From: Amoeboaphelidium protococcarum X5
Lineage: Eukaryota > Fungi > Aphelidiomycota
DNA length: 64,000 nt
Assembly: GCA_023515725.1 (NCBI GenBank)
Contig: JALDTO010000212.1
Span: 62,001 to 126,000, forward strand
Direction: 5' to 3'
Shown here: positions 9,022-14,371 of the stretch, piece by piece
How positions within the stretch are numbered: position 1 is the first letter of the stretch
Layout of the letters: every line of letters starts with the position of its first letter
Translations under genes and position numbers: made by a program
The notes under the pieces: generated by a model
Database searches by the model: none
What the model was told of the DNA's origin: nothing
Seen by the model: the letters and a program-made list of their open reading frames with translations, nothing else

Positions 9022-9225
9022 TGTGTGTAATGCAGTCATCTTGTACAATACAATTGTTAATAATGTTAAATTAATTTTACTCTTCATTAGCAGATGAAGC
9101 TTCATTCTTATGCTCTAACATATTGTCTGAAATTGTAAAGATAACCATAGATGGGACTCTAAAGCAGTAAAAACGCATTGAAGATCTATTTTTTAGTCAG
9201 TCAACAGGTCGTTTCACTTAGACGG

Positions 9226-9266
9226 TACGGAATCCGAGAGCCGCAAAAGCGCGTCGCTATTTAAAA
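9226..9266 (+). repeat. Left terminal inverted repeat
   Basis: TACGGAATCCGAGAGCCGCAAAAGCGCGTCGCTATTTAAAA. An internal copy of its core (TTCGAGAGCCGCAA) lies at 9313-9326. Confidence 0.8.
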
Positions 9267-10015
9267 AGCAGAAACGAATATTTGTTTCTTACAACTGTTT
9301 TTGTTTTTAATGTTCGAGAGCCGCAATCAGTGCCTCACATTAATACATAACGTTTTTGCACTTGTAATACGCGAATGCGACTTAACAAATTGATTAATTT
9401 TTGTGATTACTTTCTTATTTATATCATGCTGCAAAATCAAATGTATTAGTCATGCACCGTGTGTGTGTTGCTTTACTTTAATGTGCAACTTGCGCAACTG
9501 CAGCAGTATTGGTGTAAATATCTCAAGATTTTTAATATAGCAGTATTTGCTCCGCTTCTCTAGTAAAGAAATATATGCACCAAACCTCAAGCAAAAATTT
9601 GCAAACTGTTTGTGAGTAGTGGTTGCTCGATCTTTGTCACAACTGATTGCTTGATGCGTTAATCTCGAAACTGGCGCTTGCAATTTAACAGTAAGTAAGC
9701 GATTATTTGTGATAAATTGTTTTGATACTGAATGATACTTTATTATCTCTTACACACTATTCACTAAACTACTTTTTAACAACGTACAATCTTATTTGCG
9801 AGATAAGCATACAGGTATAAGCAATGCAGCATTGGGACGCCGTAGTGTTGTCATTACTTGCTGCGCCACCCCCCTTACGCCACTCTAAGATCTTACGCAA
9901 TCATATTATTAATAACAGCTCTCATAGTTCAGATAACTAAAACGCGACAAATATACGCAATCTCTTTAGTTGATATCTATATCCTAGTGTCTTTTGAATA
10001 GAATCAGTATCAAGC

Positions 10016-12031
10016 ATGTTTAATCCGTTGTAAGATGTGTTATGTCCCAATTCGTCCGGACTCAAAAGGGAGGACTGTCATTGTGCTGGATGTAAATCTT
10101 GGCAATAGGCGCAAGCCTAGTTGATGCATTCACAAATGCAATTTGAGTAAAAGAAAAAGCTTGCGGTGCAGACAAGAACCGAGTCAATGGTAAATAGATT
10201 GCACAGTGGATACCAGACTAAGCCGCCGCCCCCTGTTCATAGAAACGGTCCTGGTAGTGGAAATAGAGGTTTGACGCGTAAAAACGCGCTGGTGCAAATT
10301 AGCATTGTCCCTTGTATTTCAGGATCAAAGGTTGGATAATTTAAGCGTCTGGAAAATGTTGGCCCATAGATGATTTAGATTGACAAGTATAATGACAATT
10401 ATCAATCTGTCTTAGCATAAGCTTGTGCATTGTTTCACTATCAAGTTGAGCAATCGTCAATTGGACAAAGTCAAATCCACCAAATCCCCTAATTTGGAGT
10501 TGATTTTGACGTAATATAATGGACCCAGAATATTCAATTGGCAGGATGTAAGTATACCTCTAATAAGGATAAGGTGCTATATTTGATTCCGTTGGTTGAA
10601 AGCAATCGCGTGTAATTGCATCCTAGTTTAAAGAGAAACTATGAGTCTCTACAGTAGCTGAATTTTTTGAATGTCGAGGACTTTGATTACTAGTATGGTT
10701 TGCCAGATGAGAAGATGCAGGATAAGGATGATTTTGAAATTGTTGAACCGACGCGTACTTTAGATGAGCCTATTATTCAACCTGTCAAGCCTGTCAAAAA
10801 GATCAAATCTGCGCAGGAGTCTACGATCATACCTGTCAGTTCAAATGTTGCGAGAAATAGTTAGATTGAACATAAGAATAAGTTTTGCTAGTTTGAAAAC
10901 ATTTCCAAGGTGTCCCCTCAGCGTGTAATAAAAAATACGCGCTCCTTGTAAGGCAGTGTGGTTGTGCATGTCTACGACTATGAAACAGGCTCCTGGTTCA
11001 CTGAGGATCCAGGAGTAGTTGGAATGCCAGATCTGGCAGGAAAGACTAACAAAGGGAATATAAAAAGATGCTACTATAATGGATCTCTGGTCAAGTTTTT
11101 TCCAGATCTGCCAGTAGTCTTTAAGTGCGCAATTGATAAGGATGACGATGATTATGGATTACATGCTAGGGAAATATTAAACTCTGTTTGCGCTCAAAGG
11201 TGCTTCCTAGATTTTGACGCGGAATTGATTAAGACGCTGCTGGGTTAAGAATATCTATAGGTTGCTGGTGAGTAGCGTGGAGTTTGTGCTGGCGTGATGC
11301 TGGAGATTAGAGACAAATAAAATGAGGAATTTGGTGATATGGTGGATCTAGCAAAGATATGGACAGTTGAACCCTTCGTAGATGGCCAATTTGTGAAGTA
11401 TATCGACAACGAGCATTTTATGCAAATTTGTGATGATGATCAGACTTATGAGGAGAACTTTCGTGAAGAAGTGGCCTGGGCTTTTGCCCATTACTCCTAT
11501 TATTGGTTTGAGAAGGAGAACTACGAGTAAATGATAGTTGATATTCAAGGCTCTAAGTGTCACTTTACAGATCTTTAGGTGTGCACTGTCAATGGCACCG
11601 ATTGCAGTATTGGCAATATGGGTTTACCAGCAATTGTGAAGTTCTTCGTTATGCACTAGTGCAATTAGATTTGCAAGGCTTTGCATTTAGATGTCGCGAC
11701 CATTCCGTCTTTAGTAATGGAGAAGATTATGGAAGATTCTCTCTTAATGGATAAATTCGAGTCCACTGTGTTTGGATCTCCAGCATAGGCCGCTCCTAAT
11801 CCTCTTGGATAGTAGAAGACATCATTGAAGTCGGATGTCTCCATAACTTCTGTGTCTAAACAGGTAGAAGTTAATAATCAAGCCACTCAGGATTTGCAGA
11901 TAGTAAAGGAGAAATCTAAGATTAAGTTGGTGGATCCTATTGTTAAAAACATACGTCCGTCTAGCAGAAGACCTAATACGCGTGCTAAAAATGCTGCGTA
12001 GAAGAAATTGCCAACTTTGACTGAGGATTGA
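10016..12031 (+). CDS. Alpha-type (eEF2K/MHCK-like) protein kinase, ~671 aa, transposon cargo
   Basis: GNIKRCY loop, VVFK, EPFVDGQFVKYIDN, AFAHYSY, MIVDIQG, FTDLQV, GNMG and zinc motif HQCNQIC. Intronless frame with TAR=Gln. Confidence 0.88.
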
Positions 12032-12116
12032 GTATTTAGTAGCTCTGGTGGAGTTAACAATGAGTACGTAAAGATAGTAATAGCAATAAGAAATTTTTAA
12101 TTATTCAGACCATTCT

Positions 12117-13496
12117 TCACTAAGCAATTTCCTACCCTCTCACTTACTATTCTGCTATCAACAATTAATCTCTAAATGCATCCAGCGCGCTTACGAGATC
12201 GCCATCGGACACTAAAGCCTTGAACACATCTTGACAATTGTCAAAGGTAAGTTGATCAAAACCTTTCTCTATAACAACTTCATCAATAAGATGCCTAGCG
12301 TAATTAATTCTAAACCTATCATTCATATCTATAGTACTTGGTCCAAACAATTGAATAGCCATATCACGCATGTCTTGAGGAGGCTCCAAACCACATTCTA
12401 CTCCATCAAACATCTCGGGAACTTGATAACGCATGATGGGCTGTCCTTGATTTCGAATCTTATGGTAATTCCACAAGGTGGTAATTTTATCTAAACACTC
12501 AGCGATATAATGTCCAAAACAATACTGAGAAATTGTCTTATGAGAATAAAGCGTGGTATTAAAATAACCTGCAAAGTGAAGATTGTTCAGCGTTCCTATC
12601 CAATATTCAAGCCCATAATGATTCTATCTGCCCCAGTAACTTTCTATACGCGTATTGAAATTGGATGAACCCACAATATAAGAGTTCTCACCTACCAATA
12701 TTTCTTGCAATTACTTGATGTAATTGTTCTCAGTTCCGCCATCAACACGAACTTTTCCAGGCATAACATTGCATTTGTCAGCCGCATCCAGAAAATATTC
12801 CAGTATGTAACGCGCGGGCCTATTCGTATCTGCGACCATACTAAACACAACATACCTACTAAAACCATCTACACACGCACTTATTCCAAAGCCAAACTAC
12901 GACAGCTTATCGAAGCCATCTATATGCCACACTTAATTAGGACCATCATTTTAATATTCACGGCGTTTCAACTTGCGCCTTTTACGCATTTACACAGCCT
13001 CTGGATTGTCGAATCTTTAGCAAACCATAACCATGTCTCGAGATACTTATTGGCCTGATAGTTCACGAAGGACTTATGTAGTTGATCTAATTCCCAATCT
13101 TTCACCTTCATCCTGATTTACAACATGCACTAAATCCAAAACTTCGACAGGAGATAGCGCACAATGTCTCGTTCCAATTTAATGCTGCGACAAAATCGAT
13201 TGCAAAGTCCTTAAGGACATTTAAATATTATGCTTCTATTTCAGCCAATCCAATAATTATTGTTAAGTGGACCCGCCATTAATTAGATGGCGAGCTTCTT
13301 CAATCCAATGTTCACTTTAATCCGCAAATGTGGCTCTATTTAAAGCAGTACTCAATCCATGTTCAGTCATAAACCGGTCCAATTTGGACTTGGAGCAGAT
13401 TGTTCCACTAGAATTTAGAGTATCTAAAATTTCCTTGCGCTTCAAACCTTAATTTACTAACTGCCGTACCTGTTCCAAGTCGATTTCTTAAGACAT
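12117..13496 (-). CDS. DDE transposase/integrase with N-terminal HTH (Clr5-like) repeats, ~459 aa
   Basis: RRKLKRREY..GPNQVWHIDGFDKL, CVDGFSR, PGKVRVDGGTEN, GSSNFNTRIESYW, WNYHKIR. The D, D and E residues are intact. Confidence 0.88.
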
Positions 13497-13670
13497 TTTG
13501 CTGCAAAAAATGAATTCGAGTTAAGATGTCCCCTATTATAAGGCGGATATAGTGCATGATAAGAAACAAAATAGCAATGAATTTATTTTTAAAATTACAA
13601 AACAAAATAAAAATTAAAAATCATTTAAAATATTAATGGGAACTTTCATTTTACTTTCTATGTTTAGTAA

Positions 13671-13711
13671 TTTTAAACTGCGAGGCGGTTTTGCGTTTCT
13701 CGAACTCCGTA
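13671..13711 (-). repeat. Right terminal inverted repeat
   Basis: Reverse complement reads TACGGAGTTCGAGAAACGCAAAACCGCCTCGCAGTTTAAAA, matching 9226-9266 at 33/41 positions. Confidence 0.8.
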
Positions 13712-14371
13712 GACCGGAGAAATAACGGTTAGCTGTTACAACTACTATTCAGACAGCCCCACTTTACTGAACGCAATTTCTAGTATAATGAACTGGCTTC
13801 ATGTCTTGTTATGGACGAAGTAAGCGGCTGTGTTGGACCGTGAGATCCCAGCGCGATGATAATTCTAGGCTCCGCGCGCAAAGGTATGATCAGCAGTCAA
13901 TATTAAACGCGAGGAGTATCGCACAGAAATGGAACCAAACTATTAGCGCCATCACGATTCCTTGCCAAAAGGATGTCTTCGCTGATAAGGCTGCAGGTGG
14001 GGCACAGACTTAACCTTAAGTTTTTTCTTCCCTATTACTAGCTTATTTCTTTTTGGAGGCATTTTGTTGGTGGTTAATAATATGTAATAAAGGAGCTCCA
14101 CGCCATTGACGATAACACTACCGTAAACTAAATCTGATGTGTGACACACGAACTCACGCGTGATCATTGAGGTTGCTTTGACGAGTCACGTTGATCCAGT
14201 ACTTTGAAGCATTTACATCATACAATGTTTCATTCAGTAACTACAAGTGGTACAAATTGATATTCAAGCTCTTTAAAAGGTGCTATTTCAAAGATCGTCT
14301 TCTTATTTTAGTAATATACAGCATTTGTTACAACCAAAAAAATTGATAGACTATTGAATATAAGCAAAACT

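Follow-up and report, generated by a model that had tools for sequence, protein, structure and literature searches.

IS3EU DNA transposons are marked by TA..TA ends and 6-bp target-site duplications (TSDs) (PMC10045372), to which the definition cited in another account adds two encoded proteins (PMC8232023), and their ends in fungi read TAYGG..CCRTA (PMC12730594). The role of their second gene is unstudied (PMC11934779, PMC8232023). In the TET+ IS3EU families of seven rust species and Tuber indicum, a TET/JBP gene lies, in all families, between oppositely oriented transposase and alpha-kinase genes (Kojima 2025, PMC12730594, section 4.1). Here we describe a two-gene element at positions 9226-13711 of a 64,000-nucleotide window, the whole stretch of DNA analysed, from Amoeboaphelidium protococcarum X5, in which a transposase is paired with an alpha-kinase. 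A. protococcarum is an aphelid parasite of algae in which TAA and TAG are read as Gln. The pairing is now extended to aphelids, the sister group of fungi. A first-pass annotation, made from the letters of this DNA alone, had not known it as a characterised system in this lineage. We found no study of its function in the literature, where it could be traced to one sentence of Kojima 2025 (PMC12730594). The pairing itself was therefore already known, while the aphelid host and the minimal, TET-less, intronless and recently active form are new.

The element, a complete transposon of 4,486 bp to which no strand is assigned, is bounded by terminal inverted repeats that agree at 33 of 41 positions. 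The left repeat (9226-9266, + strand) starts with TACGG and the right one (13671-13711, - strand) ends with CCGTA. Two convergent open reading frames (ORFs), both uninterrupted under translation table 6 (code 6), encode an alpha-kinase of 671 aa (10016-12031, + strand) and a DDE transposase of 459 aa (12117-13496, - strand). Only 85 bp separate their stop codons, which leaves no room there for a TET/JBP gene. Repeats, termini and reading frames were all reproduced as the first-pass annotation had given them, and so was an extra, subterminal occurrence of the repeat core, CGAGAGCCGCAA (9313-9326, + strand). The motif GAGCCGC occurs at 9238 and 9318 only, and the core copy is probably an additional, putative transposase-binding site.

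The transposase matches PF24764 (rva_4) with an E-value of 6e-27, or 1e-8 for a stop-free piece alone, and its feature matches (Atlas) to eukaryotic rva_4 clusters score 0.95-0.96. The DDE triad is intact, with D193 in WHIDG, D252 in RVDGG and E285 in NTRIE, and no N-terminal HHCC motif was seen in the transposase sequence. TA..TA termini, 6-bp TSDs, repeats longer than 30 bp, an intact integrase-like DDE transposase and two encoded proteins are the marks of IS3EU/GingerRoot elements. By its termini, TSDs, repeats, transposase profile and protein count, the element is assigned to IS3EU, as had been proposed from its ends and transposase motifs. IS481EU was rejected, since it needs TSDs of about 4, 15 or 25 bp (PMC10045372) and those found here are of 6 bp.

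We searched the genome (23.6 Mb, 346 contigs) with the 4,486-bp element as query. Seventeen full-length copies were recovered, of which 16 are identical and one differs by a single nucleotide polymorphism (SNP). All 17 end at the equivalents of 9226 and 13711, and the termini are TACGG..CCGTA in all copies. One further copy is split by another insertion, two are truncated at assembly gaps, and five ends lie at contig borders. The kinase is present in every copy with an assembled interior, and no transposase copy without it was seen among these. Neither kinase-less copies nor other PF24764 families were found in the genome, all 20 PF24764 matches being copies of this element. In a biofilm-metagenome assembly, contigs carrying the element break precisely at 9225 and 13711, which gives independent support to the boundaries. 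At more than 99% identity, the element also occurs in another sample filed under the same species name, and in metagenomes from biofilm, freshwater and sediment. Thus 9226-13711 is an intact two-gene transposon, recently active and probably autonomous, and the mobile unit suggested by the first-pass annotation, in which a complete kinase moves with its transposase, is borne out. A lone syntenic host kinase beside a stray transposase is ruled out by the genome-wide copy and kinase counts.

Less similar sequences were also encountered. A segment on another contig (L029, C264:291589-291701) matches the left non-coding region of the element (element positions 468-585) at 75% and is probably a further relic. 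In other samples, contigs about 90% alike over part of the kinase (window positions 11006-11215), one of them 3,128 bp long, continue into unlike sequence. These loose ends probably represent diverged sister families.

The element can be compared with several described systems. It shares with the TET+ IS3EU of Pucciniales and Tuber the opposite gene orientation, TAYGG..CCRTA ends, repeats longer than 30 bp and 6-bp TSDs, but it lacks TET/JBP, measures 4.5 kb, has two intronless ORFs and resides in an aphelid host using code 6; in addition, it is represented by about 20 identical intact copies, whereas the TET+ elements are described as consensus sequences (PMC12730594). Like IS3EU/GingerRoot elements (Repbase; PMC10045372; PMC6839031), it has an integrase-like DDE transposase without HHCC, TA..TA ends, 6-bp TSDs and two proteins. 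Unlike GingerRoot, its repeats are of about 41 bp instead of 100-150 bp and its second protein can be recognised as an enzyme. Zymoseptoria has the likewise IS3EU-related Styx/REP9 (PMC8232023, PMC10853768), with 6-bp TSDs, recent bursts and a link to chromosomal rearrangement, but Styx carries four genes, none of them reported as a kinase.

The second gene matches the alpha-kinase profile PF02816 along its full length (E 1.5e-23, 84.3 bits against a cut-off of 21.3, profile positions 4-185, with the NCBI model KAI3639036.1 as query), the domain spanning residues 348-553 approximately. Its closest matches in the PDB are eEF2K (E 6e-13) and MHCK A, together with the Entamoeba kinase 4KUJ, TRPM7 and ALPK1. 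The C-lobe residues E452, K461, D509, Q511 and D519, the GNMG motif and the zinc ligands H492, H547, C549 and C553 align with those of solved alpha-kinases, including eEF2K and MHCK A. In the N-lobe, K370 and E386 are present, as assigned by motif. The catalytic, GNxG and zinc motifs are thus those of the cellular alpha-kinases eEF2K, MHCK A, 4KUJ, TRPM7 and ALPK1, and a KYIDN motif is shared with 4KUJ. Unlike these enzymes, the element kinase has a divergent N-lobe and an N-terminal region without family match, and its gene sits on a transposon. On the strength of the residues, the kinase is predicted to be catalytically complete.

No Pfam match was obtained for the N-terminal 310 aa or so. 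AlphaFold models built from the single sequence were of low quality (pLDDT 43 and 34). When the N-terminal model, a low-confidence query, was searched against known folds, it returned no match (best Z 5.0) and no support for a ubiquitin-like domain. No calmodulin-binding, WD40, vWA or channel domain was detected in the element kinase, and inspection of its N-terminus showed no hydrophobic leader or signal peptide. The NCBI model KAI3639036.1 (MIR68_002566) is 99.4% identical to kinase residues 49-671, and its first 200 residues are 100% identical to the left flank of one element copy, L012. We rejected its spliced start: the model joins a host gene disrupted at the L012 flank to the kinase, and the relics described below retain the ATG at 10016. 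The host part of this fusion has a signal-peptide-like start, with a risk of misreading the protein as a secreted kinase.

The age of the kinase was examined through its relics. Twenty alpha-kinase matches were found in the genome, corresponding to 18 element copies, one relic and one distant host gene (on contig C98). Two broken kinase relics lie outside intact elements, on contigs C212 and C233, and the latter is found at the identical locus in a second strain (GCA_023515745.1). Between the element kinase and the relics, the ratio of non-synonymous to synonymous substitution rates (dN/dS) comes to 0.06 for the 80 codons of the C-lobe core (CI 0.02-0.15; dS 0.70) and to 0.16 for 177 codons of the kinase domain (CI 0.09-0.28), with dS between 0.5 and 0.7 for these comparisons. 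In contrast, two orthologous relics, serving as a dead-copy control, gave 0.84 (CI 0.34-3.1). Environmental variants carry seven synonymous and three replacement SNPs in the kinase. From these ratios, a check that the first-pass annotation had called for, the element kinase is judged to be under long-standing purifying selection.

The burst of copies is thus recent, while the element family and its kinase are old. TAA and TAG make up 49% and 58% of the Gln codons in the two element genes, against 29-53% in host genes, and a recent arrival from a standard-code donor is excluded by this usage and by the old relics. Remnants of a transposase or of repeats did not turn up next to the relics, so that we infer their origin from elements. 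In the C233 relic (L023:1600-2240, L050:10001-10400), residues 70-285 approximately are replaced by a telobox-type Myb segment with weak TRF1/TRF2 matches (E 0.04) and 58% identity to two paired Myb genes of the host (L062, L063). The reading frame of this segment relative to the kinase is masked by frameshifts. Capture of a host Myb fragment suggests that elements of this kind do acquire host DNA.

Retention of the catalytic and zinc residues, purifying selection, the lack of a signal peptide and the distance of the host kinase together make the kinase look like a standing second gene of the element. The earlier description of it as cargo holds insofar as it travels with the element, but it is neither fresh cargo nor a secreted effector. 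The related suggestion of a vehicle for effector-like kinases finds no support, as the copies are identical instead of diversifying and no signal peptide is present. Selection on the kinase holds only as long as it resides in an intact element and gives way to decay elsewhere, and the protein is not secreted, which points to a service rendered to the element within the cell. We therefore consider it likely that the locus is a recently active two-gene IS3EU transposon whose selected kinase most likely acts intracellularly and benefits the element by phosphorylating a host protein.

By analogy with its family, the integrase-like DDE transposase would bind the imperfect repeats and the subterminal GAGCCGC motifs, cut at the TA ends and join them to target DNA opened by cuts staggered by 6 nt, and copy number would grow as donor sites are repaired or replicated. 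The kinase would meanwhile phosphorylate a host protein inside the aphelid cell, to the advantage of the element, and would have been held by purifying selection during a long residence in the code-6 lineage. Its target may, tentatively, be a factor that acts in silencing or on chromatin; a less probable candidate is the transposase itself or the end-repair machinery, and an eEF2-like translation or stress protein a somewhat weaker one again. The TET demethylases that accompany the kinase in rust and truffle elements would tilt the choice towards an anti-silencing role.

Several points weigh against this reading. One element copy has its kinase broken by another transposon, and any need of the kinase for movement is hypothetical. 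The glycine-loop Arg of most alpha-kinases is replaced by Lys350, and at residues 408 and 483 (window positions 11238 and 11462) the amplified copy carries Leu and Arg, against Pro and Cys in those outside samples that cover the two sites, so that the activity of the amplified kinase could differ. Common ancestry of the aphelid and rust/Tuber pairing is, moreover, assumed. An element that is compact and intronless, with identical copies, very recent jumps and a long-selected kinase, offers a direct test of the use that a transposon makes of a kinase.

Other explanations assign the benefit of the kinase elsewhere. It could serve the host, as a stress or translation regulator or as a factor against algal prey, the transposon being kept or amplified for that purpose. 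Purifying selection would suit any useful function, the nearest solved relative is eEF2K, and alpha-kinases have expanded in rust fungi, which are also parasites (PMC4469406, PMC5295586). We nonetheless find a host benefit unlikely, because the kinase lacks a signal peptide, all copies are identical, several insertions disrupt long host ORFs, both kinase relics, which lie outside intact elements, are broken, one of them decaying neutrally, and the genome contains no domesticated, element-free copy. The proximity of the C-lobe to eEF2K and MHCK A would also suit a toxin-like or drive component that harms cells or nuclei lacking the element, for example by eEF2K-like translation arrest. Kinase toxins are known in bacterial addiction modules. 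However, 4.5 kb of element hold no antidote gene and twenty copies are tolerated, which makes such a role very unlikely. A passive passenger captured from the host would be in line with the kinase-broken copy and with the relic that captured a host Myb fragment. This idea is largely refuted by dN/dS values of 0.06-0.16 over a dS of 0.5-0.7; the sole host alpha-kinase (C98), too distant to be detected at the DNA level, was rejected as a source, and the gene pairing also exists in distant fungi (PMC12730594), so that we regard it as highly improbable.

The history of the pairing raises a separate question. With some hesitation, it can be proposed that transposase plus alpha-kinase is the ancestral, minimal IS3EU of the fungal lineage, predating the split of aphelids and true fungi, and that the kinase acts on a host silencing or chromatin factor in a form of counter-defence so far undescribed for DNA transposons; kinase-bearing IS3EU elements may then account for the as yet unexplained alpha-kinase expansion in rusts. 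Alternatively, the alpha-kinase was captured separately in the aphelid and rust/truffle elements, with a convergent layout. TET genes do move between transposon families (Kojima 2025, PMC12730594), and no kinase relative was found beyond A. protococcarum and near-identical environmental contigs, although these searches used short stop-free pieces as queries and were insensitive. Separate capture appears doubtful in view of the TAYGG..CCRTA ends, 6-bp TSDs and opposite gene orientation common to both groups, and of GAGCCGC-like subterminal motifs seen by eye in partial sequences of the rust elements.

About 20 insertion sites were identified in the genome, each with a 6-bp TSD; the kinase thus lies between the same repeats at different loci, which answers a test proposed by the first-pass annotation in its favour. 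The TSDs are perfect for ten full copies and for the split copy, and four further pairs were matched across copies or contigs, giving 15 left/right pairs, besides which there is one perfect right/right pair. Four of the approximately 20 sites (L006, L010, L015 and the L020/L028 junctions) have imperfect duplications with 1-3 bp indels. The elements themselves being identical, these reflect either error-prone gap repair or assembly errors. Target sequences show no clear consensus. Unique flanks have a second genomic copy at 87-94% identity, as expected of a hybrid genome, and this second copy is the source of the empty homeologous sites that were found for insertions.

The flanks of the window copy, AGACGG and GACCGG, had been read as one decayed TSD. 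Two homeologous empty sites exclude this and assign the flanks to different insertions. The left flank (9220-9225, + strand) is the remnant of a GACGCG duplication that has lost one C in the window: the empty site on homeolog C98 reads CACTTA-GACGCG-CGTGCTC, and in the biofilm-metagenome assembly the left flank runs on as an empty site. Its right-flank partner is at L024, at a contig end. The right flank (13712-13717, + strand) is a GACCGG duplication, as indicated by synteny and by the empty site on homeolog C214, TCAAGC-GACCGG-AGAAAT, and the other GACCGG copy adjoins the right end of another element copy, L016 (on contig C69). Since two right ends share one target, simple insertion plus recombination is insufficient as an origin. 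A second copy of the sequence expected beyond the L016 left flank was not found in the genome, one subgenome being without it. Both the shared GACCGG and the flank tally (21 right, 20 left) would fit a right-end/right-end transposition in which the donor flank was lost. The join in the window is then an artefact of assembly through the 4.5-kb repeat (a mis-join) or the product of later recombination or rearrangement.

The element is associated with genome rearrangements in a parasite that attacks cultivated microalgae. Two inverted copies on one contig (L011 and L012, C142:18577-23062 and 361907-366392), both of which break long host ORFs, have swapped duplications, which implies that about 340 kb between them were inverted or that the assembly mis-joined the copies. 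Finally, the kinase-broken copy carries a 4,036-bp insert inside its kinase gene (L054, G000:C146:611539-615574). This insert, whose ends read GG..CC, has a 1,224-codon ORF and a duplication of 9 bp, AAAAAGATG, and is probably Mutator-like. As it sits within a copy of the burst, a second transposon family was active after the burst.

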